Below, one piece after another: positions 10,901-46,941 of a DNA stretch of 52,490 nt. Positions within the stretch are counted from its first letter, which is position 1. Each line of letters opens with the position of its first letter. A model generated the notes under the pieces. That model was not told the origin of the DNA. It searched no databases and saw nothing but the letters and a program-made list of their open reading frames with translations. The DNA is from Octopus bimaculoides (Eukaryota), in assembly GCF_001194135.2 (NCBI RefSeq), contig NC_068986.1:31256467-31308956 (forward strand), written 5' to 3'. A program made the position numbers and the translations under genes.

Positions 10901-12732
10901 ACACAACAGGCTTCTTTCAGTCTCCATCTACCAAATCCTCTTACAAAGTTTTGGTCAGTTTGAGGCTATAATAGAAGATACTTGCTCAAGAGTAGGAGTA
11001 AACCCAAGACCATGTGGTTGGGAAGCAAACTTCTTATTTCTTTATTGCCCACAAGGGGCTAAACATAGAGGGGACAAACAAAGACAGACAAAGGGATTAA
11101 GTCGATTACATCGACCCCAGTGCATAACTGGTACTTAATTTATCGACCTCGAAAGGATGAAAGGCAAAGTCAACCTCGGCGGAATTTGAACTCAGAACGT
11201 AACGGCAGACGAAATACTGCTAGGTATTTCGCCTGGCGTGCTAACGTTTCTGCCAGCTCTTACCACACAGCCAATTAGTTATTTATTTATTTATTCATTT
11301 ATTTTTCCAGATTTCTTTGGACCTCCTTCACCACCCTCAGAGCCGATAAGGCCACCTGTTATTGCTGATAATCAAGATTTGACTAGAGAGACAAATAAAT
11401 CTGATAAACCTCAAGTTAAGCAAAGCAGAAAAAAGAAAAAAGAAAGCAAACAGGTTAAGAATAAAGCAAGACGCAAAAACAGAAAGGAAAAACTTAGAAA
11501 AAAAGATGTTTTAAGCCGGCAAAGGAGGTCTTATATATTACCTTCATATACGTATGTTGATGCTGCAGAAGCGTTTGAGGTAAACCTTTTCTTATAACCT
11601 TTATTTGTTTTCTTCATTAAATTATGGCCATTCTGGGACACCACTTTGTAGGGTGTTGTTATGGGAGAATCTTGAACACCCACATGTGACTGAAGGTGGA
11701 CTATCCATTTACAATAAATGAGAACTGAGTGAACTGTCAGTGGAGGTAGTTAATGGTGTTGGCCCGACTGTGTTGGTTTATCGTGTTAGTTCAACATATG
11801 TTGGTTTAACAGTCAGTAGCTGAACAATGAGAGACGCAATGGCCCAACGGTTATGGCAGTGGACTCGTGGTCGGAGGATCGTGGTTTCAATTCCCAGACC
11901 GGGCGTTGTGTGTGTTTATTAAGCACAAACACCTAAAAGCTCCACGAGGCTCCAGCAGGGGGTGGTGGCGACCCCTGTTGTACTCTTTCGCCCCAACTTT
12001 CTCTCACTCTTTCTTCCTGTTTCTTGAGTAATGCTGCGATGGACTGGCGTCCCATCCAGCTGGGGGGAACACATACGCTATAGAAACCAGGAAACCGGGC
12101 CCATGAGCCTGGCTAGGCTTTAAAAGGGTGCATAATAAATAAGTTGAACAGTGAATACTGAGTATTGTACCTACATTCAAGTAGTACAGAGTACGTTCCT
12201 GTTTCTGTTGTACCTGTAATTCAAAGGGTCAGCCTTGTCACACTGTGTCATGCTGAATATTCCTGAGAACTACGTTAAGGGTACACGTGTCTGTGGAGTG
12301 CTCAGCCACTTGCACATTAATTTCACGAGCAGGCTGTTCCGTTGATCAAATCAACTGGAACGCTCGACGTCGTAAGTGACAGAGTGCCAACAACAACAAT
12401 AAAACAGCTAATTAATTTTGGTTAATTTCTTCTTTTTCACATTTGAGATTCTTACGTGAAAAGTTGTAGTAAATCATTTTAAGAGGATTATCAGATAAAT
12501 TTAATCCAACTTAAGACCCAGTGTAAATAAAGAATTATGTGATGTTAGATATAAGTAAAAGTTTAACCCTTTTGTTACCATATTTCTGTTGAAATGCACT
12601 GCTTTTGTATCAGTTAAGTTTGAAAATAGTGAAGAATTCAGTAAAATAATTTTTGTGTTTGGTATGTAAATTAACATGAAATTTCAATGAAAGGTTTTAT
12701 TTTAGATCACTCTAAAACTGAAAGTTTATAGC

Positions 12733-12769
<37 letters not shown>

Positions 12770-14315: not shown

Positions 14316-14401
<86 letters not shown>

Positions 14402-17400
14402 ATGCCTATGCGTGCAAATGTTAACAATTCTTGGCTTTGCTTGTCTCTGTCTGAGTGCAATGTTGTTGATATGATGTTTATATTCCTTGTTGACATTACA
14501 AATGGTTGCACTGCAATGCTAACTCTCTTCAACTGAGCATCCCTAATCTCACGGGCTCATAGGTGCTGGTGCCATGTAGAGAGCACTGGTGCTGGTGTTG
14601 CGTTAAAGCACTCAATACACTCTGTAAAGTGGTTGGCATTAGGAAGGGCATCCAGCCGTAGAAACCATGCCAAAACCGACAGGGGGCCTGAACAGCCCTT
14701 CAGCTGATCAGCACCTGTCAAACTGTTCAACCCATGCCAGCATGGAAAACAGATGTTAAATGATGATGATGATGAGTGGAGTAAAAAAAAATCTTTCACT
14801 TCTGAAACAGGTAAGGGCATCTCACTGTGAAATGCTGCTTCGATTAAGTTCTTGACCAACCCATGGTGAAATAGAAATGAAACATATGAATGAATGAACT
14901 GTTTTATGTAGATAACACTGGTGGCATGGAGACGGGAGGCTGGTATGCATGGGCGACTGCTTGCCTTCCATTGAACATCCATGCCCAGACTTGTGCCTAA
15001 GAGGGTAACTTTCTAGGTGCAATCCCATGGTCAGTCATAACCGAAGGGGGCCTCAGAGATGTATGTATATGTGTGTGTGTGTCTGTATGTATCATCATCA
15101 TTATCATCATTATTATTATCATTATTGTCCATGCTGGCATGGGTTGGACGGTTTGACCAGAACTAACAAGCTGGAGACCTGCATCAGACTCCAATCTGAT
15201 TTGGCATGGTTTCTATGGCTGGATGTCCTTCCTAACACTAACCACTTTGCAGAATGTGCTGAGGGCTTTTATGTAGCACCATCTCATGTGCTTTTCACCA
15301 CCAAAAGGGCTGGTCTTCACACTTCTACTGCATAGTGACCTGTAGCTATAGTAGAAGACACTTGCCCAAGCTGTCACGTGGTGGGACTGAACCCAGAACC
15401 ATGTGGTGAGGAAGCAAACCATTTACCATGCAGCTACACCTGTTTCGTCATTCGTTGTTGAACGTCCGCTTTCCATGCTAGCATGGGTTGGATGATTTGA
15501 CTGAGGGCTGGTGAACCAGATGGCTACACCAGGCTCTAATCTGATCTGGCAGAGTTTCTACAGCTGGATGCCCTTCCTCACGCCAACCACTCAGAGAATG
15601 TAGTGGGTGTCTTTACATGCCACCGGCACGAAGGCCAGTCAGGCAGTACTGGCAATGGCCATGCTCAAAATGGTGTATTTTATGTGCCACCCGCACAAGA
15701 GCCAGTCCAGGGGCACTGGGCAATGGGCACTGGCAACAATCTCGCTCAAAAATCCTTACACATGTCACGGGAACAAGTGCCAGAAAGGCGACGCTGGGCA
15801 CAGGTGCCATCCCGATTTCGCTTTCGCTTGCCCCAATAAGTCTTCGCAAGCTGAGTTTCGTGTTTGTGTATTAAAAAATATGAAATGCATTGTTTTGTTT
15901 GTACTGTTTCATAAGTGAAGAAATCCATTGGGAATTTAATTGCTGCTTATTTTTCTTTTCTCTCTTAGGACCAATGTATTACGCCGCCCCTCTTGCAGAA
16001 ATCACCAAAGATAGAAAACCAGTTCCTGCGAAAGTTCAGGTGAAGCAACCAACACATGACTCAACAGAAACCCGTTCTTTCTTCCCAGAAACCTGGCTAT
16101 GGGATATTGAAGTTGTTGGGTAATCCTCCTCTTCTGTCATCATCGCTGTTGTTGTCATCATCATTACCATCATACCTAACATTGCTGCTAGTGGTGGTAG
16201 CAGCTGCAATAGCATCATTGTTTCACCATTTTTTCTTTTTTTTTGTTCTTTTTTATATTTTTGCCATGACTATATAGGTTAGATTGATTTGCTCTACAAT
16301 GTATGAGGTATATATATTTTTTTTTAAATTTCCATGTTTTTTTAATTTTCAACATTTTCAACTCTTACTCTCTGCAGAAACATATAATATTTTCATCTTT
16401 TCTCTTGGATGCACAAATGCATGTTATATTTTCACCTCGTCAGTCCTTTCTGTAAAAGAGAAGTCAAACAAAAATGAGTAGAGGAAGGAATACTCTTGAG
16501 GTACTGATGCTGAGTATATTAATGTTTCTGAAATATGGGATCATTTTTCAGAGTGTGACAAATTTAGTGAGTAGGAAATAAAATTTGCCAGCCAGTTGGT
16601 AGGTGGAAATTCTTAAGTAAATATCAATGGAAGTGTCTGCAAGAAGTCGTCAATTTAGATATCTTTTTCAAAACAGCAGAAAGCTACAATTGACTGCCAT
16701 ACTCCAAGAGACAGAGATTACTTTCTGAAGCCAGTGATATAAAGAGATATGTATCCTTTAATGGACCTATAAATCATATAATTGTTATTTCTTATCATTA
16801 TCCTTTAGACTCCAGATATATTTGGAGAGTGAAGTGGCAAAGCACATTCCTGAGTGAATAAATGCTGTAAGAAATCTTTTTTAAAAGAATTTTCAATGAG
16901 TTCTATTGTAGTTTCTTTTAAAAGTTCACTGCCAAATGTATGCTTTAGAAATACACATATTGGAGTTGTTACAATAATGCTGAGTAGAAGAGTTCTGCAT
17001 GTTCATAATGGAGAGGTTTCTTCCCTTTATGCTTTTGAAGCAGTGAGGTTTTTAGTGCAAGTATAACTCACCTTAACATTAGTTTTATTAAGGATCTAAT
17101 GACATATACTGATAATATTAGAATGAAAATATAAAACTTCAGAGAGAATTGTGCAATATTGAAAATCCTCTTCCATTTTTGTATTTATGAATATTAATGT
17201 TACTATATATGTAATGCATTCGAGCTTTGAAGTCATTGACTTTTAATATGTCATTTCAATAATGAACAGTATGATTAATAAAGGTTCTTTGCCATAAGAT
17301 AAACTGGACATGTAGGTATTGAAGCTATTAAGTTTTTTTGTTATGCTTGGGGATGGGTGGAATCTATAGTAATAAACTGTAATTTCTCATTAGGGTATCA

Positions 17401-27664: not shown

Positions 27665-28534
27665 ATAAACTCTGTGTGTGTGTGTTTGTATCTGCGTTTG
27701 TTCCCCTCATCAAAAGGGTTGTGCTATTGTCATCATTTCCAAGATTTTTTTATAAACTAATATTATATAAAATATACTAAATTTCAATTAATTCATTAAG
27801 TTATTAGTTAAGTCCAGTTGAACTGATGAATTGATTGTTGCCATTATATTTGTAGGAGATCTTATGGGGCCAACTCTGTCTGGTCTGGAGAACCTTGTTA
27901 AAATGCCTTATGGATGTGGAGAACAAAATATGGTTGGATTTGTACCAAATATCTATGTTATGCAATATTTAAAAAATATTGACAAAAAAGAATCCCCATT
28001 GATTTCTTTAGCCACCAAATACATGGAGAAAGGTAATTTTGTGTAAAATTTATATAAAATTAAAACAAGATTTTATTTTTCAATATTGTATTTAGTTTAT
28101 AAAGTTGTTTTAAGTCCTTATATAGTTCATTTAAAATTTCAATGTATATTGAAGGAAAACAAAAAGAGTAATTTATTTCATAGTCTAATTGAATATAAAT
28201 ATTTGAATACACATATAAATAAACAGACAAAATATATACTCACACATAAAGGCTGTTACATAATGTGGAATGCATATATATGTACACACACATACATGTA
28301 CATATATATATTATACACACATACACATACACAGAGGCGTAGGAGTGGCTGTGTGGTAAGTAGCTTGCTTACCAACCACATGGTTCTGGGTTCAGTCCCA
28401 CTGCGTGGCATCTTGGGTAAGTGTCTTCTACTATAGCCTCAGGCCGACCAAAGCCTTGTGAGTGGATTTGGTAGATGGAAACTGAAAGAAGCCCGTCGTA
28501 TATATGTATGNNNNNNNNNNNNNNNNNNNNNNNN

Positions 28535-28569
<35 letters not shown>

Positions 28570-31500
28570 ATGTGTTTGTGTGTCTATATTTGTCCCTCCC
28601 CAACATCGCTTGACAACCGATGGTCGTGTGTTTATGTCCCCGTAACTTAGCAGTTCGGCAAAACACACCGATAGAATAAGTACTAGGCTTCCAAAGAATA
28701 AGTCCTGGGGTCGATTTGCTCAACTAAAGTCAAAAAGACTGAAACAAGTAAATGAGTAAGAGTATACATACATACACACACATACATACATACATACATA
28801 CATTCATCTATCCATTCATTCATTTGAGAAGACCCATCAAGCCAAGTGAAATCATAGTCATGGCTGATGCTGGTATCTATGTTATACAATATTTAAAAAA
28901 TACTGACAAAAAAAGATTCCCCTTTGATTCCTTTAGCCAGTGGCAGGTAAAAAGCACCTTTCAAGTGTTGGGCAATGTAAAAAATTACAATTCTTAGTCA
29001 TTACTTTAAGTTACAATATCAATATTAATTTGTCATTCCATATATTTAAAGATATTTAATTTAAAGATATTTAATTTAAAGATATTTAATTGTGAAATCA
29101 TTTCATTTAAAGGTTACCAAAGAGAATTACAGTATCAACATGGAGATGGAACTTTTAGTGCATTTGGTGAAAATGACAAACAGGGAAGCACTTGGCTCAC
29201 TGCATTTGTCTTGAAATCTTTTGCCCAGGCTAAAGACTTTATATTCATAGATGAATTGATAATTTCAAATATTATGTTCTGGTTTCATAGCAACCAAATG
29301 GAAAATGGTTGCTTTCATGAATTCGGTAAAGTCTGGAGTAGTTATCTGAAAGGTGGACTAGAGAGTAATGGTGATATTCCATTGACAGCATATTCTGTAA
29401 TTGCAATTCTCGCGACTAATGTTCCAAACCGTGTATGTATTTTAATGTTTCATAATAATTTGATTGGCTCTTTTGAGTTACATTTATGAATTTGTGTAGC
29501 AAGATTCTTGATGTTGAAACAGATATTGTAGTATTTCAGGATGTCATGTGTTGAAACAGATATTGTAGTATTTCAGGATGGTCATTTTTGTTTGCCAAAT
29601 AAACACACACACTATATATTCGTTCTTCACTCATTTATTACTGTTCTTATTCTAATTCATGTGCATCATCTGGAAATCCTTCGTCACAAATCTGTGACCT
29701 CCTCAGCGACACATTCCATCTTCATATGTGCTCTTGCTCTGCATATTCCATTCTATTCTTCTATGATGTGTTATAGAAGAACAGAATGGAATCGGCAGAG
29801 CAAGAGCACACACAAAGATGGAAAGTGTTGTTGAGGACAAGGGACATGAGTTAGAATAAATGAGTGAAGAATGACTATATAGTGCATGCGTTTATTTGGC
29901 ATTAAAAAAAATGACAATATTTTTTCAGTTGCTTGTCACAAATTTTGTATTTTTTTCAATTTTGTTCCAATTGTTTTCAAATTTGGTTATGCCAATTTAG
30001 TTTTGTATGCTAATTACAAAAGCCGACTCAAAAAAGTACCTTTGGATCATAGGGCGACATGCCGTGTTTGAGGAGACCTATTGAGTCAAGTACATCAACA
30101 TCTACATCAACATCAACATCAAAATCAAATCAAGCGACAATCAAATGGAAATTATAGTTGTGGATGATACCAGCGCCACCTGACTGGCTCCCCGTGCCTG
30201 TGGCACATAAAAAGCACCATCCAAATCTGGTTGATGCCAGCCTCCTCACCCCGACTAGCTCCTGTGCTGGTGGCATGTAAAAAGCACCATCCAAACATGG
30301 CCAATACCAGTGCTGCTTTGATGGATAGAACAAGCCTACAAGATCAGCTACTACAGTACCACTATAATTCACTATGGAGAATTTGAAGCCAATAGTTATG
30401 ATTAAAAAACATTTTCCTGGCATTCATCACTGTTCTGATTGCTAATCATTGTGAATTGTTACCAAAAATTCAAAGCTTTCATTAGAAGGAATTTTGATAA
30501 AGATAGACAGGATTCCACAATACCAAATTAGGTAAAGCTGCAGGTTATTTTATTTTCGATACCATCAAACTAGTAGATAACAGTGGTATTGCAGCTATTT
30601 TTATCTCATTTCATCATACTTCTAATCTTTAGGATAATGTTATCAAGAATGTACTTACTATCTATGCACAATTTGATTTTGGAGAGATTAATTAATCTCC
30701 ATTTGGAGCTGGTCCTTCAGAGTGATTTAAGGGAGCTGTGGGGGTAAGGTAATCCAAACAGTCTTCTGTTTTTAGTAGGGTCGCAAGTTTCTTCATAGAC
30801 ATATAATTAAGTGTGCAATGAAAGAAAATAAAACTTCTTAGATTTTGGGAGAGTTAATAGTATTTATTTACAGGTTGACTTAGCCCCTATATCATTCAGG
30901 TAACAGAAAGGGCATCAGCTAAAGAAAATATGCCTGAATTAATTTCATGTGACCTATACAAACATGAAAATGTAGGTGTTAGAACTATGATGATACAAAA
31001 AAATCTTCAAAATTCTACAGCTTTTGTGAATTTATTCTTTTTATATTTTTCTGACTTCGTGTTTGTTTTACAGAATTTTACTTCAATGGATCTTATAAAC
31101 AATGCTATGGCATGTTTATCAAAAGCTGAAGTGAATGATACATACACATTAGCTTTAATGCATTATGCTTTTGTGCTGTCTGGAAGTAATGAGGAAAAGA
31201 AGAACGCTTTAAGAGAAGAATTGATGAATCGAGTTATTCGTGACGGTAAGAAACAATATAAGATACCTTATATTATTATTATTTGAAAGAATTGTTAGAG
31301 AACTGAACAAGATGCCTTGTGGTGTTTATTCCAGTATTTTATGATCTGAGTCCAAATCCTGTTGATATCAATTTTGCTTGTATTATTTGGAGTTTCATAA
31401 AATAAATATCTCAGTCAAATATAACGGGGAGAGACATAGGGTCAATAAGATATCCAAAATTTCTTCTAATCCTTCTGTTCAAACTTTTCATTTTTCTCAG

Positions 31501-31695: not shown

Positions 31696-34286
31696 TAACT
31701 TTCTAATGGTGCCCTAACTGTATTTAATAGAAGTTCTGAAGGAAATAAAGCAAATTTCATTGCCAAAAGTATCTTTAGCAATCAAAAAAAGTGCTAGTAA
31801 TTCTAAGAAGCCTTTCCTAGCTCTGCTTTTATTTCATCTTCTTTTAATACAATTCTATATTTGTGAGATGAGGAATTTATATTATGTATAGTGTTTATAT
31901 TATTTGGGCTGGTGTCTTCATCTTGATTGTTGTTTTTATTATGTATTGGCTGTTGTCCACTCCAGCTCCTTTTCAGGTGTCTTGTGTTGAACTTGATTGT
32001 TGCATTGAGCATAGTGTAGTAGATAAAGATGTTGGTTAATGCAGTACAGACACCTAAAGGTTCTGAGTTCAGTCCCAGGCAACACACTAAGGTAATTCAC
32101 AAAAATCAACTGAAGCAGAAAATGTCATGAAACACAGGGAGTAGAATGAGAACAGTGTATCCCCTTGGATCAAATAAAGGGTTAGGTTTGAAATTCTGAT
32201 ACAACAGAATTTAATGCAAGACACCCGAAGAAGGCTGGAGCATACAACATCCAAAAAGTAGTGACGGTAACAATCAAGATGTGGACTCCAGTCCAACTAA
32301 TATAAACAGTATACATATCTTCTTCTTTTATCTTTTGAAATTTTTCCTTATTCAATTATTTTTTCCTAATTTAAACAATTTTTTTGTTGTTGTTTTCTTA
32401 TTTCATCATACTTCTACTACTAAAATAATTTCATAGATGGAAACATGTATTGGACCAGAGACAACAAAAAACTTGAACCCGAAGAAACTGATCCTTGGTT
32501 TTTCTATGGACAAGCTTCCTCTGCTGAAGTGGAGATCACATCATATGTTTTACTGGGTATTTTGCAAGATGAAGGTATGAGTGCAGTGGCCCAGACTTTA
32601 CCAGTTATACAGTGGCTTACAAAACAAAGGAATCCATATGGAGGTTTCACCTCAACACAAGTAAAGTCACATTTCATTTCTTCGTTATTTTGTTGTACCC
32701 AGGAAGGATCATTATATCAATAATAACACATGCATTGGTTCTATTTCACTTCTTATTTGTCAGTTTGCAAACTATTAAACCAATGAACTAATTGTTTGAT
32801 TAATCCTTCACTTCAGAACATTTTTATATCTACAATTCTTGTTACTACTGTTAACTAACATGAACTGTCTTCTTCCTTTTGCAGGACACAGTACTTGCAT
32901 TACAAGCTTTGGCACAATATGCCAAATTCACTTACAGAGATGGACTTAATATGCATATTGCAGTAAAAGGAGATGAATTTGAGAAGGAGTTCTTGATAGA
33001 TGATATCAACAGCTTGGTATTAAAGACAGAAGAGATCAAAATCTTGCCTAATGAAATAAAATTGAAGGCCAAAGGATCTGGATGTGCCTTAGTTCAGGTA
33101 AAATATGAAATTCAATTTATGCAAATTTTATATGATGGTGTTTTTGTCTGTCACTAGGCATTGGTCAGTTGAGGGCTAAAGTAAAAGACACTTGCCAAAG
33201 GTACTCTATAGTGGAACTGAATCAGAAGCCATGGGGTTGCAAAGCAGGCTTCTTAACCACAGCTGTGTCTGTGTTCAATGGGAGTCATGTATATAAATCA
33301 GCTGGATTTTCATATCTAAATAAGACATACAAGGTGCATCTAGTTTGTGTTTCTCTTATCACTGGCAAAGTTGATGCTCCAGTGTAATGGGAAACAGCTA
33401 CTGAATTGTCTCCCTTATTTGCTAAACTTGTAATAATATAATGTCGTTTTAATGTACTGATATGCTTGACTTTCTAAAATGGCTGGAAGTGTGTTCACAT
33501 TATATAAAAGCTGTAGTCAGTCAGTCTATAGCAAAACAGTGCTATTCTTGTATCACACCATTTTCATCATCACCATCATGACGAGAGCATTGAATTGACA
33601 GAATTGTTAGAGGTTGACTCCACCTTTCATTTTTCTGGTGTTGGTGGGGGTGGGGGGGTGTCAATAAAATAAAGTACAAGTCAACTACTGAAGTCATTTT
33701 AACCTTTTCTTCCCGTTCTCCTCCATATCTTTAGCCTGATGCTTATGTAAGAAACGATTATTATTATTGCATTCTTTATATTTTACTTAACGTGGATAAT
33801 ATGTAGAAACCCAGAAAAGTGTAGCATTCATCTCAAGAAAGTGCTAAGAAAGCATGTATGTACCTTTTTAGCACTGTAAATCTATACGAGATGCTCTTCT
33901 TGAAATTATTACTGCCAGCAGTTTTCTATCTTTCTATAGCATATCCACATTGAGTAAAATATACTGAATGTTATTTTGAACTAAGACTGCTTTCGTCATT
34001 AACAACAAATCCTCGTCAGTGTCATCGTTGTCATCGTCGTCATCATTACTACTACTGATGAGCACAATTGGCAAGGTTTTTAGAGTATCAGACAAAATGC
34101 TTTGTGGAGTTTGTAGCATTTACATTCTGAGTTCAAATCTCATCAAGATCAACTTTACCTTTTATCCTTCTGAGGCGGAGGGGGTTTGATAAAATAAAGT
34201 ACCAGTCAAGTACTGGTCTTGATTCACTAAACTGTTTCACCTGTCATCTCCAATTTCCAGCCTGTGACTAATTTTAAAATAATTAC

Positions 34287-34327
<41 letters not shown>

Positions 34328-34337
34328 NNNNNNNNNN

Positions 34338-34377
<40 letters not shown>

Positions 34378-35866
34378 CCATCATTACAGTGTTTCATTTT
34401 CATTACCATTATTATCATATAACGCATTTTGTTTGTCAATTCCTTTAATTTTTAGATGAATGTCAAGTACAATGTGTTTGAAATTATTGCCAATACATCA
34501 CCATTAAGACTAAAAGTGTTCCCTGTCTACACTGAAGGAAAATGTGACCGAGCTATACTACGTATTAGTGTTGGGTGAGTCTGCTTATAAAAGATATTTT
34601 TTATATTAGAATGTGTTCATTGTTATAATAATAATTATTATTATTATTATCATCAGGGTTAATAAAATGAGTACCAGTTGAACACTGAGGTTAATGTAAC
34701 TGACCCAATCTCTCCTCTGAAATTACTGAATATTTACAATGTTCAGGACAATTTGCTGTCTCAGAATGAAACCTGTTTTTTCCAATGTGTTCTATTATTC
34801 ATTTATCATTGAATCACCTGTGATAAACAAGGACAAATGTGCATCCACTTCTACAGTTAAATCTTTTAGATAGTTATATCACACAGACATTTTATTGTGA
34901 AGCAACTTGCTCTTGTTATTTACAAGCCTATTTCCTGTTGAGGTTAATTTTGCCTTTCACCCTGCTTTAGTCAATGAAATAAAGTACCAGTTAAATAAAT
35001 AAAATGTTTGTTTTTCAATTTTTTTTTTTTGCAGTGATTTGTCTAACAGCACCAATATGGCGGTTTCTGAGATCAAACTCCCAACAGGCTGGGTGGTATA
35101 TCGACCATCTTTGAAAGAAGTAAGTTATATCTGAATAATAAATCATTAAATTTTGGAATTAAATCTTTCCATTCATGTCTTAAGAAAAAACCTATTGAAG
35201 TTATCGAATAACTGAGATAGATCATTAGTAAATCATAAATCACTACTGCCCAAAAAACATATGTAAAAGCAATTTAAACCTACAAATTAGCAACAATTTC
35301 TCCATCTATAATTGATATTTTTGCCATGTGTGACCCTGCTAACATTTTTCTATTATTCATAGGTTTTTTTACCACACCTAATCTTATAACAATTACTGAT
35401 TTCTCTAAGTATTCTAATTTGTAGAATGCCTAATGATATTTGTTTTCAAAAATGGAAATAAAAATAAATCTTATCTGAATGATGAAGCTGTAATAACTTT
35501 CTACATTGTGTCAGTGCCATGTAAAAAACACCTGTGCTGGTGCCATATCAAGAGCCCTTGTGCCACTGCAATGTATAAAGCATCTGTGCTGGTGCCATAT
35601 CAAGAGCCCTTGTGCCACTGCAATGTATAAAGCATCTGTGCTGGTGCCATATATAGGGCACCCATGCTGATTTCACATATAAAGCACTGGTGTTAGCTTC
35701 ATATAAAAAGCACCCAGTACACTCTGTAGAGTGGTTGGTGTTAGGAAGAGCATCAAGCCATAGAAACAATGGCAAAACAGACAATTGGAGCCAAGTGTAA
35801 CTCTCCAGCTGGTCAGCTTCTGTCAAACCAGCTAACCCATGCCAGTTTGGAAAATAGACACTAAAG

Positions 35867-40681: not shown

Positions 40682-43600
40682 TGTATGTACACACTCAAAT
40701 ACATATACTTACAAACATAATATACACTCTTTATGATTTAGAAATTTAGCTTTTGCAAAACATTATAGTTTGTAAATATATCTTTGTTCTTTTTTCTTTG
40801 TCTTTCTAGCTGGAATCATCTACCAATGGCTTAGTAAAACGAGCTGAAGTACAGGATGCTGATACTCAAGTGAACATCTACTTTGAACAGGTATACTTTT
40901 TAAATTGGCTTCATTCAACAATTTTTTCTGGCTAAGGGAAACCCTAAGTTGGGTGTAACATTTGTGTAATGTTTCTTTTAAGCAAACTCATGTATAGTAT
41001 CAGCATACAGATCAAATTTAACTGCATGCAAAGAATTAAATGTATATGTTCAAAGCAGGTACAGAGTTGGTTGACTCACAGTAAATAAATGACAAAATTT
41101 AGAGCTATGTTAATCATGCTGTTGTATGTAGGTAGTTGAGTTGATAAGGATATAATGCAAATGTTTGTGTTTGACAGATGGCAACATGTATTGAGTCATC
41201 ACAGCATTAGATTTAGTTCATATCTGGGACACATAACTCTCAAGAAGCTCAAATCCTCTAAATGTAAGCTGGTCATCTCACTAAAGTTGGCAAAGTCAGA
41301 AGAATAAATTTCATGAATGCTTATTAGCTTTTGGTGCTAAGTTTTCCCCAGAAATTATAACTTGGAGAAGAGTGATCTTTGCTAAGATGACTAGTTTTTA
41401 AAACACTACATGAATATGAAAAGCTTCAATGGAGCCTTTGTTGTTCAGTCAAGATGTGGGGTTCTTTCATCACAGTACCCATGCTCTTAGTTTCAGAATC
41501 AGTTCATTTGATTCCCTCAGACACATTGTGAAGGAAGTTAATGCTACTGATTTCTCTTGGCTTTAAGTTTCTACGCAACCAACCATATGATCTTGACCTC
41601 TTTCTTGTTACTTATGAATGTTCTGTGCCATGTAGTTTTAGATCTTTCTCTCTTTATTTTTTCCTCTAGTGCTGTCCATTATATTCTCAGAATCCTTCTC
41701 AAGCATGCTGCACCAATAAGAATAAAAAAAAAGGAATAATATAATACCATAAAATGTTCAATAGTATTATAGACAAAACTGTTAAAATGATGATTCACAT
41801 ATATATATACACACACACATGCATTTGATTAGGTGTATTAATGAAAGAAAGTAGCCCTTTGTACAATTAGTTGAAGTTGTAAGTATCTAATAACAAGCTG
41901 ACTCAGCTCCACATTACTTAAAGTTTCATAGCCAGAGGGATACATCTACATCCTCCAATGTACAGAGTCAGACTGAAGAGAACTTTTGAAAAATTGAAAA
42001 GAAGGCTACTAGAATATTCATGTCTCTATTGGTTTGTTCAGGTCATGTGGCTTTAATCTATGTGGCTTTAATATATGGCTTTAATCAATCCATTGCTACA
42101 ATAGAAGACTCTTGTCCAGGGTTCTGTGTTGTTCAATGAAAGCTAGAACCATATGGCTAAGAAGCAAACTTCTTAACTACACAACTATTTCTGCAACATG
42201 AAGTAAGTATTATTATGTAATTTAACTCAGAGAAGGGTAGATTAAAAACAAAAACAGTAAAAATAAAACAATTGTAAATAGAAGAAATTCTTAAATGAAA
42301 AATGTATGAGTTGGCAATCACTTCATTGATTGATTGTTGTATCTTTTGTTTTGAGAGAATTTTTATTTATTTGTAGCTACCAGCTAGAGAAGAGACATTT
42401 TCTTTCCAAATTGTCCAAAATATAGTTCTTGAAGAGACAAAGCCAGCGACCTCTGTACTGTATTATTATTATGAAAAACGTAAGTCATGGCTTATTCATT
42501 GAAACTTGTTTCTTGAACATCTATCATATTTTGTCATCAAATTTGAAATGTTCCTTGATTTTGAAAGCTTGTTTGTCTCTTTCCACACAGAGTTATGCAT
42601 GTGTGTGTGTGCATGCATTATATGACATTCAATGTAAAATCTATTATGGCAAGAGACTTCCTAACTCTTACAAACAAAAAGTTCCTTCTTTGCCATAGAT
42701 ATAGAAATATGTTTAACAGACATAACCTTAAAATCAGCTATAGTTGCATGAAAACATAATGCTCTCTTTTACTCTTTTACTTGTTTCAGTCATTTGACTG
42801 TGGCCATGCTGGAGTACCACCTTTAGTTGAGCAAATCAACCCTGGGACTTATTCTTTGTAAGCCTAGTACTTATTCTATCGGGCTCTTTTGCCGAACCAC
42901 TAAGTGACGGGGACATAAACACACCAGCATCGGTTGTCAAGCAATGCTAGGGGGACAAACACACACACATATATACATATATGTGACGGACTTCTTTCAG
43001 TTTCTGTCTACCAAATCCACTCACAAGGCTTTGGTCGGCCCGAGGCTATAGTAGAAGACACTTGCCCAAGATGCCACTCAGTGGGACTGAACCCAGAACC
43101 ATGTGGTTGGTAAGCAAGCTACTTACCACACAGTCACTCCTGCACCTAATAGGAAAATTTAAATAAAGATTTGGTGGTTATAGATCCCTTTTAAACACAC
43201 TGATGAAAAACAATAAAATTGGATAACTACATTTAGAAATTAAAAGGCTTCGGAATACACAGTGTCAATTGGAAAATTTTGGAGAGATTCAAACTGTACC
43301 AACTTGGAAGTAAACTATATGTATACACATATACATTCATACATCCATGTTATACCGGATATGTAGTTGTATTTGTGAGTATGTATGTGCACGTATCTAA
43401 TATTTTATTTATTTGTAAAATTAATTAGAAAATTAATTAAAATTTTGTTTTTTATTTCTTGTAGAAATTCGTACTGCTTATGTATTTAACCTGACAACAA
43501 GATGTGATAAGGATAAACCAACCAGTGGTCATGAAAGTAAGTTTATGAGGATATTGAAAGAATATTCTCTTGAAATACCTTTTGTCAATTTTATAAGAAT

Positions 43601-46600
43601 TTTCTTGTGCAAGAGGTCTTTGTACCTTCTCTTTATTTTAGTCACCTTCCTTTTTCTGTCAATGTTTCTATAGGACTATGTAAGAGTGCATGTTTGAATG
43701 TTTCCCCTCTTTCTCTTTTTTCCTTCCCTCCTGAGATTTCATGTCAAATATGTGTGTGTGTGTGTGTGTGTGTGTGTTTGTGCATATATGTAAGGCATTA
43801 GGAAGGGCATCCAGCTGTAGAAACCAAGCCAAATTTGATTGGAACTGCTGCAGCTCTTCAGCTTGCTAGCTTTGGTCAAACCGTCAAACTCATACCATCA
43901 TGGACAATGGATGATAAATGATGATGATGATATGTACAGAAGAAAGAAAGAATGGATAGGCAAACAATTGGTATCAATTAAGAGCATGGAGTTTATATAT
44001 TTAAGCATAATTGCAGAGCGGTTACAACAGAGTTGTTAGAATTGAGCGTATATAATTAGAAGGCGTGAAATAGTCTCTTACAGCTATTTCCAAAATAGAT
44101 GTGCCTTTGATGTGTTTCTAAGCCAACAAAGATAAGTCTTCCATATATTAGTGGATTATTCCATCTTGAGAGAGGGAAAAAGATGGAAGGAGGCTGAACT
44201 GGCTTACCTAAGCAGAAGTTTGGGGGAGAAGCAGGCTTCATACTGGCAAAAAACAACCATCACATATCAAATATTTCTTGATTTTTCAATCTATAGTATT
44301 TAGTTTTTTTTCTTCTTTTTTTTTTACTTTGATATTATATTATTTATAGAAATATTCTATATCATTATTTTAGAAATCTTTGAATAAAAATTGAGTAAAC
44401 TGATTGTGTTTAGGACAAGAGCTTCCTTTCATGCCATAATCTATTGAAGAGTTATGGCTAAAGGTCTGAATATGGAAGCTTAATCAAGTATCTGAAGGTG
44501 TAAAAGTATTAATCATGATGCTCATATTGATGATAATAATGATGTCAGTAACAAGAATCATATTTATGATTAATTAATTTTTCTCTTTTTTTCTCTTTTT
44601 TTGCATTTTCATAAACAGAAAATTCAACTGAAGAAATACAGAAGGTAAAAAATATTACCCAATTTTTAAAAGAAATTTGATTAAAAATAAGAATTTCAAT
44701 GTAACGTCAACCCCCACCCCTTAACCTAGTGCAGTGAAGAGTTAATTACTTGATCTTCTGTTACCTGTTCCTGACAACTGTATGAAACAAGGCAATGTTT
44801 TGAGTTGTCAGTTAAATTTTTTTCAGTTTTTAAAAAATCTATTTGGTACTCCGTTGTCATATGTGTAAAAAGTGTCATATGTGTAAAAAGTGTTAACATT
44901 TATTCAAATTTTAAAAACGATAAATAAAAGTTGTTGAGGAAGAAGAGAGCTACAAAAAAGCCATAAAACACCACAATAAAAATATTTTTTTGTGCTGATT
45001 CAAATAACATTGTTGGAAAGGATTAAAATAAATAGAAAATAAATAAACGAATAAACAAATTTATCAGACAACCCATTGGAAAAAATGGCCTTTTTATAGG
45101 TCAAATATGTCTCCAAAATATTTGAACTAATCTAAAAGTTTGCCAATTCTGAAATTTATGTATAAAGTTCCTCATTAAAAAAAAAAAGAAGTAGTTCTCA
45201 TAAATTATTTGTCTTCCTTTTCTTTCAGAGATGTCCAGTGTGTTATGATACAGTTCCTGAAAACTTCATGGATATTTTCTGTAAATCTGTTGCCAGTGAG
45301 TATCAAAGATTCTTATGCCCTTTTATTATTGTACAAATTGGCTGCTGTTTCTAGCAAGTTATGCAACCATATAGAGATTCCCTCACTGACTCCTACCACT
45401 AATGTTCAAGGGAAAGGTGTTAATGTCACAGCATCTTATTGATATCTCTGATTTTGTGTTCATGTAAAGCACTGATATTGCTTTATATTGACTAACAATA
45501 TGGATTCTCATTTGTTTGAAAGTGCTACCAAGAAGTTGTGGTATTCATGTTTTAACTCAAAGATATTTGCATTGAAAATGAAATGGCTCTTGTAGGAAAT
45601 TGAATAAATTACATATTTACCTTGCAATTTTGTGGGGAGCAAGTCAATTACATTGAACCCAGTATATGACTGGTACTTTAATTTATTGCTCGACCATCTC
45701 CCACCCGTTCCCAAGGATGACACAAAGTCAACATTGCCAGAAATTGAACTCAGAGCATAAAGAGCTGGGAGAAATGCCACTAAGTATTTTGTCCAATATG
45801 TTAATGAATCTTTTAGCTCACAATCTTCTTGCTAGCTCACCACTTCTTCTGAGCAAGTCTAACACATTTTGTCTGCTTTTTGACGGCTGAAATAGCTATT
45901 CTATCATATAATTACATTAGAAAGGTAAACACAACGAAATAAACATGACCATTTTTAAGCCCAGGTTTGTTAGAAGCTTATCACTATACTTGATATGTGT
46001 TCTGTGTATTATATAAAAACAGATTTCGCTTTATTAGGTTATGAAGGATCATTGAATAACTAAATATCTTTTACAGCTTATAAAGCTGGTTTGATGAATG
46101 CCCCTTCAAAATTGAAGATTTATTCAAATGAAAAAGCCAAGCCAAGAGAAATAATAAACTCAACAGTTAAGCTTGATATCGATAGCAATTGTAAATGTGA
46201 CAATTTGAAACATGAAGGTAAGTTTCTATCTTTCATTTTTTATCTTTTACTTATTTCAGTTAATAGATGGTGGCCTTACTAGGACACTGAAAGGTTTACT
46301 CTTTTACTTGTTTCAGTCATTTGACTGTGGCCATACTGGAGCACCGCCTTTAGTCGAGCAAATCGGCCCCAGGACTTATTCTTTGTAAGCCTAGTACTTA
46401 TTCTATCGGTTTCTTTTGCTGAACTGCTAAGTGACTGGGACATAAACACACCAGCATCGGTTGTCAAGCGGTGTTGGGGTGGACAAACACAGACACACAA
46501 ATACACATATATATATATACATATACATATATACGATGGGCTTCTTTCAGTTTCTGTCTACCAAATCCACTCATAAGGCTTTGGTTGGCCCAAGGCTATA

Positions 46601-46941
46601 GTAGAAGACACTTACCCAAGTTGCCACACAGTGGGACTGAACCCAGAACCATGTGATAGAGAAGCAAGCTTCTTACCACACAGCCATGCCTGTACGTTTA
46701 TACATGATGAAAATTTTAAACAATTTTCCAGATTATGGTATTCAAAATAATGTTATATATCATTATATATTTTTAATCTTTTCCAGTATCCACCATACTA
46801 GCAATTGTAACCAGGAAAAATCTCTATGATGATGCTGCCAAGAAGATTCAGCTGAATGAATTTTCTTCAATATTTCCAACTTCTATGATCAAAAATATTC
46901 GTAAGGAGTTGAAGACATCTCCATGTAAAATCGGTGCATAG
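1090..46941 (+). CDS. Thioester-containing protein, alpha-2-macroglobulin/TEP/CD109 family, with C-terminal NTR-like domain; 5'-partial, 29 exons in window (~1,386 aa)
   Basis: Manual splice reconstruction: all introns GT-AG, phases match, 4,163 coding nt ending in TAG. Family motifs: [96 protein letters not shown]. Confidence 0.95.
1609..1773 (+). CDS. TEP/A2M exon 2
   Basis: cag|..|gtttgt; IIVTTPDKKPVPNIDIEVQIQDTNGTLNNYITDNDGMINALIPAQKSSVKRLRIK. Confidence 0.88.
2418..2770 (-). mobile_element. SINE with CORE-like segment
   Basis: Minus strand TGGTTCAGTGGTTAGGGC..GAGTTCAATTCC head, then CTTGGGCAAGACACTTTATTTCACATTGCTC. Confidence 0.55.
4074..4304 (+). CDS. TEP/A2M exon 3
   Basis: cag|..|gtgaag; includes QWYSLSNSFISI (SPSNSF-like motif) and ends TIYYQ. 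Confidence 0.88.
4607..4781. mobile_element. TTAA-target MITE, same family as 47084-47296, opposite orientation
   Basis: TTAA|CCTTTAGCATT ... AATGCTAATGGG|TTAA. Confidence 0.65.
5060..5400 (+). mobile_element. Decayed Tc1/mariner transposase N-terminal fragment
   Basis: KGLAPKVI...; EPRSRCPATATTKEDIDCVHHIVMDGRLLTMNPIA resembles mariner PRSGRPSTA..NI..V...V..DRR.T; bounds approximate. Confidence 0.6.
5744..5900 (+). CDS. TEP/A2M exon 4
   Basis: tag|..|gtttaa; VLSYGKTLVSNSTNHNHSTLHHVSFKEP...NQDEET. Confidence 0.82.
7027..7196 (+). CDS. TEP/A2M exon 5
   Basis: cag|..|gtaag; ...LIVYYIRSDNEIISDSIKIPVKNCFPNP. Confidence 0.92.
7961..8110 (+). CDS. TEP/A2M exon 6
   Basis: tag|..|gtaag; VSMMFNKDSAQP...[25 protein letters not shown]. 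Confidence 0.93.
8250..8652 (-). mobile_element. tRNA-derived SINE family A (internal microsatellite)
   Basis: Head GGAGTGGCTGTGTGGTAAG..GGTTCAGTCCC (A/B-box-like), GGGCAAGTGTCTT body, GTAAAAGAG tail; copies at 9886-10296(+), 28334-28760(+), 39243-39660(-), 42766-43146(-), 46284-46690(-), 52128-52290(+) and older ones. Confidence 0.8.
8877..8961 (+). CDS. TEP/A2M exon 7
   Basis: tag|..|gtaat; VFEKMSAYNLLRVGQRRKVHHCNYMNFP; phase 0 in, phase 1 out, fits both neighbours. Confidence 0.8.
9793..10555. mobile_element. hAT-type MITE interrupted by a SINE
   Basis: Perfect 8-bp TSD ATCTAGGT (9785-9792, 10556-10563); imperfect TIRs TAGTTGTTCTCGACT / CAGGGGTTCTCAAAC. Confidence 0.75.
9886..10296 (+). 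mobile_element. SINE family A copy nested in the hAT MITE
   Basis: Near-identical to 8250-8652 in reverse orientation. Confidence 0.8.
11040..11260 (-). mobile_element. SINE-like family C
   Basis: GAGCTGGCAGAAACGTTAGCACGCC..GTTCTGAGTTCAAATTCCGCCGAGGT..AAGTACCAGT; copies at 20886-21110, 25725-25935, 37920-38130, 48402-48520, 50690-50850. Confidence 0.65.
11311..11579 (+). CDS. TEP/A2M exon 8 (Pro-rich + polybasic segment, furin-type site RQRR/S)
   Basis: cag|..|gtaaac; DFFGPPSPP...SRQRRSYILPSYTYVDAAEAFE. Confidence 0.88.
12922..13015 (+). CDS. TEP/A2M exon 9 (start of bait-like region)
   Basis: tag|..|gtatg; ATGLAVLTDLNLETKPCDFNYFRNRGVIGAP. Confidence 0.88.
13392..13772 (+). mobile_element. 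tRNA-derived SINE family B
   Basis: GGCCCAGTGGTTAGGGC..GGTTTCGATTCCC head; AGAGTGCCAACAA tail; copies at 7358-7730(-), 9110-9364(+, partial), 11831-12398(+, composite). Confidence 0.8.
14319..14400. repeat. (TG)n microsatellite
   Basis: Direct read. Confidence 0.95.
15969..16119 (+). CDS. TEP/A2M exon 10 (bait-like region, FPETW)
   Basis: tag|..|gtaatc; GPMYYAAPLAE...[16 protein letters not shown]. Confidence 0.93.
17222..17696 (+). repeat. Diverged ~223-bp tandem duplication
   Basis: GAGCTTTGAAG at 17222 and 17445, with colinear similarity following. Confidence 0.8.
18466..18694 (+). CDS. TEP/A2M exon 11
   Basis: cag|..|gtaag; [15 protein letters not shown]...[35 protein letters not shown]. 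Confidence 0.95.
18950..20200 (+). mobile_element. Decayed Mutator-like (MULE) transposase with N-terminal FLYWCH-type motif, in intron 11
   Basis: YWRCKNHVCKARL..HNH; WVADGTLK..FFQLYILH; MDFKKAAHNGF...CCLFHLEQ; YFENNYIG; TTNTFEAYH; several stops and frameshifts; ends approximate, no TIR identified. Confidence 0.85.
20395..20541 (+). CDS. TEP/A2M exon 12
   Basis: cag|..|gtgag; VKLQLVTSKDF...LCVCSEKSEVVEYVIIPQEIGEIDINVT. Confidence 0.92.
21279..21374 (+). CDS. TEP/A2M exon 13
   Basis: tag|..|gtaag; AKALNKRSTCDSKGFQIKQRSEDNLSRKLLIT. Confidence 0.88.
23111..23162 (+). CDS. TEP/A2M exon 14
   Basis: tag|..|gtaag; AEGLLREYTYNSFFCLE. Confidence 0.88.
23405..24020 (-). mobile_element. 5'-truncated RTE-like LINE: ORF end + 3' UTR + (GAT)n tail
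   Basis: Minus strand EGTCGRGKPKKTRDEVVKYDL (GRGRPRKTW-like ORF end) runs into the repeat also seen at 545-889, 15440-15800 and 35500-35923, ending in (GAT)n. Confidence 0.65.
24142..25625 (+). mobile_element. Putative non-autonomous Helitron-type element spanning an assembly gap
   Basis: 5' A|TCTCTATAACTATAAAAC followed by (GT)n; 3' hairpin CCCGG-GCAAAG-CCGGG, 8 nt, CTAG|T; linkage of the two ends across the gap is inferred. Confidence 0.55.
24476..25367. other. Assembly gap (N)
   Basis: N run; other gaps at 26640-26868, 28511-28534, 34328-34337. Confidence 0.98.
26058..26153 (+). CDS. TEP/A2M exon 15
   Basis: cag|..|gtaaat; ADEDSVKVDTVRLDLPKTHLVPESSRAFVSVI. Confidence 0.9.
26235..26342. 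mobile_element. Short TTAA-flanked MITE
   Basis: TTAA|CCTTTAGC ... GATAAAGG|TTAA. Confidence 0.5.
27856..28032 (+). CDS. TEP/A2M exon 16 (thioester GCGEQ at 27912-27926)
   Basis: tag|..|gtaat; [39 protein letters not shown]... Confidence 0.97.
29113..29432 (+). CDS. TEP/A2M exon 17 (TED domain)
   Basis: aag|..|gtatgt; [19 protein letters not shown]...[15 protein letters not shown]...GKVWSSYLKGG...LTAYSVIAIL. Confidence 0.96.
31074..31245 (+). CDS. TEP/A2M exon 18
   Basis: cag|..|gtaag; ...NNAMACL...DTYTLALMHYAFVLSG... Confidence 0.93.
32437..32660 (+). CDS. TEP/A2M exon 19
   Basis: tag|..|gtaaag; MYW...SAEVEITSYVLL...WLTKQRNPYGGFTSTQ. Confidence 0.96.
32885..33097 (+). CDS. TEP/A2M exon 20
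   Basis: cag|..|gtaaaa; [13 protein letters not shown]...KGSGCALVQ. Confidence 0.95.
34288..34377. repeat. (CAT)n microsatellite containing a 10-N gap
   Basis: Direct read. Confidence 0.9.
34456..34574 (+). CDS. TEP/A2M exon 21
   Basis: tag|..|gtgag; MNVKYNVFEI...EGKCDRAILRISV. Confidence 0.88.
35035..35119 (+). CDS. TEP/A2M exon 22 (receptor-binding/MG8 domain)
   Basis: cag|..|gtaag; [28 protein letters not shown]. Confidence 0.92.
35529..35652 (+). repeat. 52-bp tandem repeat, ~2.4 copies, inside LINE 3' UTR
   Basis: CTGTGCTGG at 35532, 35584, 35636. Confidence 0.85.
35868..35923. repeat. (GAT)n microsatellite (LINE tail)
   Basis: Direct read. Confidence 0.9.
36790..37195 (-). mobile_element. 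Decayed RTE-clade LINE ORF fragments
   Basis: KEAWKCHYERLLNVENEW and ...RKVRHKRNQTWF... segments resemble RTE ORF2; internally deleted; bounds approximate. Confidence 0.6.
37504..37880 (-). mobile_element. 5'-truncated RLE-type (R4/Dong-like) non-LTR retrotransposon 3' end, copy 1
   Basis: [51 protein letters not shown]...LLGSAHILRK; flanked on both sides by (ATT)n. Confidence 0.8.
38184..38760 (-). mobile_element. 5'-truncated RLE-type non-LTR retrotransposon 3' end, copy 2 (diverged subfamily)
   Basis: RANKPDVVVKDK...CLLIDMSIP...KLRKCKDL...IPVIVGALG...GTSHVLRRALSL*; PD..D endonuclease motif; (ATT)n at both ends. Confidence 0.8.
40810..40890 (+). CDS. TEP/A2M exon 23
   Basis: tag|..|gtatac; LESSTNGLVKRAEVQDADTQVNIYFEQ. 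Confidence 0.9.
42377..42479 (+). CDS. TEP/A2M exon 24
   Basis: tag|..|gtaag; LPAREETFSFQIVQNIVLEETKPATSVLYYYYEK. Confidence 0.9.
43465..43536 (+). CDS. TEP/A2M exon 25 (end of MG8, linker)
   Basis: tag|..|gtaag; QIRTAYVFNLTTRCDKDKPTSGHE. Confidence 0.82.
44619..44644 (+). CDS. TEP/A2M exon 26, 26-nt micro-exon (linker)
   Basis: long pyrimidine tract + cag|..|gtaaaa; KNSTEEIQK; needed to convert phase 1 (exon 25) to phase 0 (exon 27). Confidence 0.68.
45229..45295 (+). CDS. TEP/A2M exon 27 (NTR-like module start)
   Basis: tttctttcag|..|gtgag; RCPVCYDTVPENFMDIFCKSVA. Confidence 0.8.
46077..46217 (+). CDS. TEP/A2M exon 28 (NTR-like module)
   Basis: cag|..|gtaag; TYKAGLMNAPSKLKIY...DIDSNCKCDNLKHE. 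Confidence 0.8.
46787..46941 (+). CDS. TEP/A2M terminal coding exon 29
   Basis: ttttccag|; VSTILAIVTRKNLY...ELKTSPCKIGA* (TAG 46939-46941). Confidence 0.78.

Follow-up and report, generated by a model that had tools for sequence, protein, structure and literature searches.

In papers on invertebrate thioester proteins, which divide the family into complement and A2M groups, the anaphylatoxin (ANATO) and C345C domains are used as markers of the complement group (PMC7016707), the domain order "A2M...A2M_recep-C345C" has served as a genome screen for C3 (PMC11312191), and C345C is treated as a complement hallmark or as a criterion when screening for invertebrate C3 (PMC7016707, PMC11312191, PMC9363628). 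The A2M-type proteins are the most highly expressed thioester proteins in snails (PMC7016707), and a review of A2M evolution, in which an Octopus A2M is modelled on human A2ML1, leaves any extra domain unmentioned (PMC12939704). The stretch analyzed here, referred to in its entirety as the window, comprises 52,490 nucleotides (nt) of Octopus bimaculoides DNA (contig NC_068986.1) and contains one large gene on the + strand, which starts before position 1 and has its stop codon at 46941. The part at 43465-46941 is very probably the 3' end of an octopod A2M/PZP-like thioester-protein gene carrying a divergent NTR module. The architecture of an A2M body with an NTR tail is not new: it is under-described and present in many public gene models, and the window adds one more member to an architecture that is already in the public protein sets. 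In the literature searched, whose coverage leaves out subscription papers such as those on the cloning of spider, tick and Limulus A2M, an NTR tail on an A2M-type protein is nowhere described.

The tail is encoded by the following five exons, the secondary structure given for them being that of a predicted model:

43465..43536, + strand: tail exon 1 (72 nt), in which the receptor-binding domain ends with its final strand (IRTAYVFNLTTRC) and the linker begins (DKDKPTSGHE)
44619..44644, + strand: tail exon 2, a linker microexon of 26 nt (KNSTEEIQK), required for the reading frame
45229..45295, + strand: NTR exon 1 (67 nt), C1-P-x-C2, N-terminal helix and C3 (RCPVCYDTVPENFMDIFCKSVA)
46077..46217, + strand: NTR exon 2 (141 nt), beta-strands and the C4-x-C5 motif (..DSNCKCDNLKHE)
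46787..46941, + strand: NTR exon 3 (155 nt), the strand ILAIVTRK, more strands and a C-terminal helix of basic character, together with C6 and the TAG stop (..KELKTSPCKIGA, stop)

All five are bounded by AG/GT, and tail exon 1 ends in a strong donor (A/GTAAGT) at about the place where vertebrate A2M terminates, the C-terminus of the latter lying a few residues past the cysteine equivalent to the one in this exon. When spliced (slashes marking the junctions), the tail reads ...TTRCDKDKPTSGHE/KNSTEEIQK/RCPVC..IFCKSVAT/YKAG..NCKCDNLKHE/VSTIL..SPCKIGA-stop, i.e., 129 residues with six cysteines arranged as C-x2-C-x12-C-x42-C-x-C-x52-C (2/12/42/1/52), while a seventh (in TTRC) belongs to the receptor-binding domain and not to the tail. 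Together with the five exons upstream, the tail exons make up a single unbroken open reading frame (ORF) of 353 residues, in which Pfam A2M_recep is found at residues 115-204 (71.6 bits); the original prediction, a reading made from the letters and their ORFs, had followed the frame through five exons to just such a six-cysteine end, and in this it was right.

The tail exons are real coding sequence under purifying selection. By coding log-likelihood (codon usage trained on the remaining exons of the gene), the proposed frame is the best of three, and the only positive one, in each of the five exons, and the tail scores +0.16 per codon vs. -0.12 ± 0.18 for stop-free intronic ORFs, while the 26-nt microexon ranks first among the 74 frame-compatible AG..GT candidates and has the best splice signals. 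The genomic locus of Argonauta hians has five tail exons in the same order and phases, likewise AG/GT-bounded and 72, 23, 67, 150 and 152 nt long, all the length differences from the octopus being multiples of 3. The similarity of the two species at the DNA level is confined to the tail exons and their near flanks, fading within ~20 nt of the exon edges, with the exception of the microexon, the flanking pyrimidine tract of which can be aligned to Argonauta as well; the residues KSLAAEPK, encoded by the 23-nt AG/GT microexon of Argonauta, are part of the annotated protein GAB1609825.1. The ratio of non-synonymous to synonymous substitutions (dN/dS) between octopus and Argonauta is 0.32 over the 150 codons that could be aligned, or 0.35 when only the NTR is counted (dS ~0.7). 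As to the transcript, the 6107-nt Logan contig SRR20545810 (Sepia pharaonis cluster) holds a 1739-residue ORF in which the body and the tail follow each other without interruption, and, because the gene spans >86 kb in octopods, a contig of this size must derive from mRNA, which therefore places body and tail on one transcript there.

Reading through the donor at 43536 (43537-43670) gives a hydrophobic ORF of 46 residues (..SLYLLFILVTFLFLSMFL, stop), which resembles a glycosylphosphatidylinositol (GPI) or transmembrane signal and does not align to the Argonauta protein; it is probably AT-rich intron translated by chance, and a tail-less isoform that leaves the 43536 donor unused may exist.

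Relatives of the protein were reached by a protein search with the contiguous 106-residue TED exon, the best match of which is the 1682-residue "pregnancy zone protein-like" GAB1609825.1 of Argonauta hians, followed by the 1739-residue protein of the Sepia pharaonis cluster. The same tail ends the proteins of Argonauta, the Sepia pharaonis cluster, abalones (Haliotis), Bulinus, Lottia and a scallop (Argopecten), and is also found in a damselfly (Ischnura), stick insects (Bacillus rossius, Timema), a spider (Uloborus), a tick (Ixodes), a horseshoe crab (Tachypleus) and amphioxus (the PZP/A2M-like XP_066273833.1 of Branchiostoma lanceolatum). Among the near-full-length representatives, 12/47 carry it, and the tail-less ones either end shortly after the receptor-binding domain or have CD109/insect-TEP-type ends. 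One of the bearers, V4BC80 of Lottia gigantea, is already labelled "NTR domain-containing protein" in UniRef. That classical A2M has no such domain, as had been stated at the outset, holds true for vertebrate A2M, but not for the many invertebrate A2M-like proteins that carry the tail. Some public gene models of tail-bearing A2M-like genes are mis-terminated: P0185 (1766 residues) runs from the linker into integrase-like sequence, and the Sepia pharaonis models P0266 and P0267 (1842 and 1855 residues) overrun the NTR stop and add ~100 junk residues of hydrophobic character.

The NTR module, as described by Banyai and Patthy in 1999, reportedly comprises ~110-140 residues, its six cysteines following the pattern C-x2-3-C ... 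C ... C-x-C ... C, with disulfides from C1/C2 to C4/C5 and from C3 to C6. The window tail has this cysteine order, and so do 17/17 members of the tail family (2/11-15/41-47/1/50-65), in which the six cysteines and the proline of CPxC are the only columns invariant from cephalopods to amphioxus. Against a hidden Markov model (HMM) of the 15 non-octopod tails the window tail scores 77.2 bits, whereas 1000 of its shuffles with the cysteines held fixed reach 2.8 on average and 24.8 at most. The Pfam family PF01759 (UNC-6/NTR/C345C; cut-off 21.9 bits), which gives 64.6 bits to the sFRP1 NTR used as a control, matches the amphioxus tail with 35.1 bits over model positions 3-101 of 106; this is the only member of the tail family to pass the cut-off, the Ixodes tail scoring 20.7 and a member of the horseshoe crab cluster 13 bits.

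HHalign aligns the tail family to an alignment of genuine sFRP1 NTRs with a probability of 94.4% (E 8.5e-8) over 81 columns, the cysteines being in register from CPxC through C5 and on into the next hydrophobic strand, and the C-terminal third of the module, including C6, being left out. Against single sequences, the probability is 93% for sFRP1 vs. 1.4% for the C345C of human C3, the sFRP1 query having been 100% identical to database entries and the C345C query having scored 335 bits against human C3; the figures for netrin-1 (56%), PCOLCE (11%) and TIMP-2 (2.3%) were obtained with unverified sequences and are leads only. The real sFRP1 scores 43.6, its 200 cysteine-fixed shuffles 12.6 ± 2.9 (maximum 25.2). 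The structure predicted by AlphaFold2 for the Argonauta tail (61% identical to that of the window; input with a 16-sequence family alignment) has a predicted local distance difference test (pLDDT) score of 85.5 and a predicted template modelling (pTM) score of 0.80 and consists of six strands, with one helix preceding and one following them. With this model as the query, 49/50 top Foldseek matches in the PDB are of the NTR/TIMP fold (rank 47 being another OB-fold protein) and include the C345C domains of C4, C3, C5 and cobra venom factor, the PCOLCE NTR, the hookworm AceES-2, TIMP-1 and the agrin NtA, at TM-scores of up to 0.70 and E-values from 7e-4 to 1e-2. In that model the tail cysteines would span a folded domain of 115 residues, unlike the short cysteine signature of CD109 and insect TEPs; nor was an end of the CD109/insect-TEP type seen in the spliced C-terminus (..KELKTSPCKIGA), which is hydrophilic and has no GPI signal.

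Both the cysteine order and the profile and model comparisons support the reading of the tail as a divergent NTR module with the cysteine framework of netrins and sFRPs rather than an ordinary C345C, and the original prediction had indeed called the spacing typical of sFRP and netrin NTRs. It had also set the C345C domain apart from them, which is justified as far as the differing cysteine pattern and the 1.4% go, but C345C is itself an NTR subtype.

The body of the protein could be followed through most of the window. GAB1609825.1 maps by tblastn to window exons from about residue 320 to its C-terminus, and the signal peptide and MG1-MG3 therefore lie outside the window. The main landmarks are these:

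11292..11579, + strand: bait-region exon, lysine-rich, with an RQRR/S motif (tblastn with Argonauta residues 664-747; splice edges approximate)
~12920-13017, + strand: bait exon, aligning to the Argonauta bait
15947..16120, + strand: exon closing the bait region, with FPETWLWD at the start of MG6b (coordinates of the tblastn match)
~27840-28034, + strand: TED exon around the thioester
27912..27926, + strand: thioester GCGEQ (in ..VKMPYGCGEQNMV..; PYGCGEQNMV), aligned to the thioester site of human A2M
29112..29429, + strand: TED exon with the catalytic-residue position (Ser, KVWSSYLKGG), 84% identical to Argonauta
32885..33097, + strand: last TED/CUB-return exon (..GSGCALVQ)
34456..34574, + strand: MG8/receptor-binding-domain exon (MNVKYNVFE..EGKCDRAILRISVG)
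35035..35119, + strand: receptor-binding-domain exon (DLSNSTNMAVSEIKLPTGWVVYRPSLKE)
40810..40890, + strand: receptor-binding-domain exon (LESSTNGLVKRAEVQDADTQVNIYFEQ)
42377..42479, + strand: receptor-binding-domain exon (LPAREETFSFQIVQNIVLEETKPATSVLYYYYEK), 87% identical to Argonauta at the DNA level

When searched against the PDB with phmmer, the region from TED to CUB scores 281.8 bits with A2M, 265.5 with A2ML1, 240 with CD109 and 149 with mosquito TEP1, vs. 106-110 with C3 and C4 and 86 with C5, and the best database matches of the TED, CUB and receptor-binding regions are A2M, A2ML1 and PZP. The thioester motif GCGEQ is intact, and the catalytic position is occupied by a serine (KVWSSYLKGG) opposite an asparagine of human A2M (SLLNNAIKGG), there being no histidine; serine is the usual residue at this position in the A2Ms of molluscs and of most protostomes (PMC7016707). 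The bait-region exons between MG6a and FPETWLWD align to the Argonauta bait, and a cysteine-rich anaphylatoxin-like exon was not found in 8113-16034. Full-length orthologues show Pfam MG2-4, A2M_BRD, A2M, TED and A2M_recep and no ANATO, with MG2 and MG3 being present in GAB1609825.1. As judged by these sequence features, the body is of the A2M type and not C3, in agreement with what had been noticed initially (a bait-like region, no catalytic histidine and no anaphylatoxin cysteines).

The RQRR/S motif of the bait exon at 11292-11579 is kept in Argonauta (ASRRQRRSFAFPDY vs. LSRQRRSYILPSY). Should a furin-type site there be real, the mature protein would consist of two chains as in C3 and C4, which would be unusual for an A2M-type trap.

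Several results pull the other way and have to be set against the reading of the gene as an A2M-type one ending in an NTR module: PF01759 does not match the window tail even at E<=10, whether the receptor-binding domain is included or not; sequence searches of the PDB gave no match for this tail or for the family profile, and no NTR protein for the amphioxus tail; the predicted structure is that of the Argonauta orthologue and not of the window protein; and the linkage of body and tail on a transcript comes from the Sepia pharaonis cluster and not from the window species. Because the window tail itself matches neither PF01759 nor the PDB, its NTR identity rests on transitive and profile evidence, and on this evidence (the family HMM, the PF01759 match of amphioxus, HHalign and the AlphaFold/Foldseek results for Argonauta) the domain check proposed with the original prediction comes out in its favour, despite the PF01759 miss of the window tail alone. 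A lineage-independent cysteine-rich domain that mimics the NTR spacing without being homologous to NTR would be in keeping with these misses, as well as with the pairwise BLAST of the tail vs. sFRP1 (E 0.47) and the modest Foldseek E-values, yet it is very unlikely: the amphioxus member exceeds the Pfam NTR gathering score with an alignment that covers almost all of the model, the HHalign score for sFRP1 far exceeds that of any cysteine-fixed shuffle, nearly all of the top Foldseek matches share the NTR/TIMP fold, and genuine NTRs barely match each other pairwise either (sFRP1 vs. Sizzled, E 0.1). Were the tail exons, on the other hand, not part of the A2M gene at all, being instead a small gene of their own or ORFs lined up by chance, with a microexon that merely forces the frame, it would make sense that the frame hangs on 26 nt, that skipping the 43536 donor yields a read-through ORF and that the transcript evidence stems from another species. 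Such a scenario is scarcely credible, however, as 43537-45228 offers no credible first exon that would combine an ATG, a signal-peptide-like stretch and a good donor, the microexon is the best of all its candidates and has an Argonauta counterpart the product of which is in the annotated protein, and the same fusion recurs in at least 12 representative proteins from several phyla; an unlinked tail, which had been named beforehand as the finding that would speak against the fusion, is contradicted by both GAB1609825.1 and the Sepia pharaonis contig, each of which carries body and tail in one protein or ORF.

Another alternative is that the gene encodes a C3-like complement factor ending in an ordinary C345C, in which the anaphylatoxin domain has been lost or is hidden. 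An NTR-type domain at the C-terminus after MG8 is, after all, the architecture of C3/C4/C5, the RQRR is located where C3 carries its beta-alpha processing site, and BgC3-1 and BgC3-3 of Biomphalaria are without ANATO, too (PMC7016707). Nevertheless, this is extremely improbable in view of the TED scores (281 bits to A2M vs. 106-110 to C3), the serine in place of the catalytic histidine, orthologues that have the Pfam A2M bait-region domain and no ANATO, and a tail family that HHalign relates to the sFRP1 NTR and not to the C345C of C3; a TED domain falling within C3 and accompanied by an ordinary C345C, against which the original prediction had also wished to be checked, is thus not what the scores indicate, and all three refuting conditions set with that prediction have come out in its favour.

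In the preferred reading, which joins an NTR tail to an A2M-type body, the product could be pictured as follows. Some 20 residues of hydrophilic linker, part of them from the 26-nt microexon, follow the receptor-binding domain, and three further exons supply a module of ~115 residues with three presumed disulfides, predicted to fold as an OB-type beta-barrel flanked by one helix on each side. The body possesses all the features of a bait-and-trap protease inhibitor and, going by what is established for A2M, would act as one, with cleavage of the bait by a protease bringing about a conformational change upon which the GCGEQ thioester would react with the protease; the serine at the catalytic position would make for A2M-like rather than C3-like reactivity. 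The tail would be a non-catalytic docking module on a flexible tether, most likely binding either a clearance receptor or polyanionic ligands such as glycosaminoglycans and the surfaces of cells or microbes, and its docking would localize or clear the inhibitor. In this it would resemble the NTRs of netrin, sFRP and PCOLCE, which bind heparin, and C345C, which docks partners on C3b. Polyanion binding is proposed because the tails of molluscs are strongly basic, their net charge being +5 to +21 in 9/9 of them and the C-terminal helix being basic in most. This role of the tail, argued by analogy as it is, can be put forward only tentatively, with the scales tipping slightly to the other side: the tails of amphioxus, the tick and the horseshoe crab cluster have net charges of -1, -1 and -3, and no surface residue is invariant besides the cysteines and the one proline.

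Two other roles have to be considered beside docking. The original prediction had suggested that the tail could add TIMP-like metalloprotease inhibition or heparin/Wnt binding to the body, and the TIMP part of this is improbable. The tail might be a second inhibitory head, binding metalloproteases in the manner of TIMP or PCOLCE and possibly released at the K-R that directly precedes C1 in Octopus and Argonauta; the N-domains of TIMPs share the NTR fold, TIMP-1 is among the Foldseek matches, and the A2M family has a precedent in CPAMD8, which carries an extra Kazal inhibitor domain at its C-terminus. Canonical inhibition by TIMP needs the free alpha-amino group of Cys1 in an N-terminal C-x-C, though, whereas C1 of the tail is internal, within C-P-x-C, and the K-R is not conserved (KT in Sepia, AG in Haliotis, QG in amphioxus). 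Because of these two features TIMP-like inhibition of metalloproteases by the tail seems unlikely from its sequence, the HHalign value against TIMP-2, itself only a lead, points the same way, and the second-head idea as a whole, with its release step, is quite improbable. The tail could alternatively work as C345C does in C3b, recruiting a specific partner protease or adaptor (e.g., a factor B-like one) after activation, which would suit its same position in the domain order, its same fold and its flexible linker; the family, however, shows neither detectable sequence similarity to C345C nor a conserved surface position, and the body is of the protease-trap type, so this must be regarded as unlikely.

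With regard to evolution, the C-terminal NTR might be ancestral to the whole A2M/C3 superfamily rather than an invention specific to complement, which is a possibility worth stating, even if a rather doubtful one. If it is so, the A2M-type proteins of protostomes and amphioxus have kept the six-cysteine netrin/sFRP form, the C345C of C3/C4/C5 is derived, and vertebrate A2M/PZP/A2ML1, CD109 and insect TEPs have lost the module; the presence of C345C/NTR would then be invalid as a criterion for calling an invertebrate C3, and an old docking function would be common to the proteins of the trap type and those of the complement type. The closer similarity of the tail to sFRP and netrin than to human C345C neither supports nor excludes an ancestral NTR. 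Either way, amphioxus, several arthropod groups and, among molluscs, cephalopods, gastropods and bivalves have proteins that are of the A2M type by TED similarity and domain content and end in an NTR module. Standard domain searches usually miss their NTR, and genes of this kind are at risk of being named C3, or of being truncated, during annotation. They bear on the timing of the gain and loss of the C-terminal NTR in the thioester-protein family, and they put an unstudied module onto a type of thioester protein that is highly expressed in snails (PMC7016707).

The window is otherwise eukaryotic DNA of high AT content, in which interspersed repeats are numerous and assembly gaps occur. Runs of N lie within introns of the gene at 24476-25367, 26640-26868, 28511-28534 and 34328-34337; the Argonauta-mapped exons are contiguous over these gaps, with the possible exception of residues 1002-1010, which are perhaps unmapped, and a small exon could therefore hide in 24476-25367. 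A repeat of ~400 bp resembling a short interspersed nuclear element (SINE), with an internal dinucleotide microsatellite, is present in at least 8 copies of both orientations and 67-89% identity, all except one of them clearly intronic and two in introns adjoining the tail exons; the copy at 10668-11036 ends a short way before the bait-region ORF, or may even run into it. Fragments of a decayed DNA transposon have FLYWCH (20.2 bits) and MULE transposase (20.5 bits) scores, both just below the Pfam cut-offs, and a mariner-like ORF sits ~2.3 kb downstream of the stop codon of the A2M gene. The positions of these elements are:

1788-2154, 8249-8656, 9898-10297 (- strand), 10668-11036 and 28346-28729 (- strand): copies of the SINE-like repeat
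39250-39654, 42768-43145 and 46290-46700, plus fragments elsewhere: further copies of the SINE-like repeat
18950-19234 and 19560-19772, + strand: ORF fragments of the decayed DNA transposon (18950-19772), in the intron after the exon ending at ~18700
49208-49876, - strand: mariner-like element with an ORF of 222 residues, Transposase_1 (73 bits, mariner/Mos1-type) and HTH_48

When compared with the known systems, the tail resembles the N-terminal domain of TIMPs in its OB-type NTR fold and differs from it in having its first cysteine preceded by a whole A2M body and in showing no profile similarity (to TIMP-2). With the sFRP and netrin NTRs it has in common the framework C-x2-3-C, C, C-x-C, C and the hydrophobic strand past C-x-C (ILAIV in the window, FLIMG in sFRP1), at a sequence identity of ~16% and in a wholly different host protein; Wnt-related function is mainly in the cysteine-rich domain of sFRPs, which is absent from the window protein. 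The C345C of C3/C4/C5 is likewise an NTR-fold domain that forms the C-terminal end of a thioester protein immediately behind MG8, and it provides most of the top structural matches of the Argonauta tail model, beside the PCOLCE NTR and AceES-2; its cysteine pattern is different, however, the tail has no detectable sequence relationship to that of human C3, and the host in the window is of the A2M type, without ANATO and without the catalytic histidine. Vertebrate A2M, PZP and A2ML1 are the best matches for TED, CUB and the receptor-binding domain and share the thioester, the bait and a catalytic position that is not histidine, but they stop 12-45 residues after YDYYE and have no NTR tail. The invertebrate A2M-like relatives have it all, i.e., the MG domains, bait, TED, receptor-binding domain, linker and six-cysteine tail with the invariant C-P-x-C...C...C-x-C...C, although their tails are only 15-32% identical to the one in the window, their linkers range from ~20 to >100 residues and their tail charges from -3 to +21. 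The nearest counterpart is GAB1609825.1 of Argonauta, which belongs to another octopod lineage and differs in its microexon (23 nt vs. 26) and in small in-frame changes in NTR exons 2 and 3, while being an orthologue (84% identity in the TED exon, 61% in the tail) with the same five 3' exons and phases, the same RQRR bait exon and the same set of Pfam domains.

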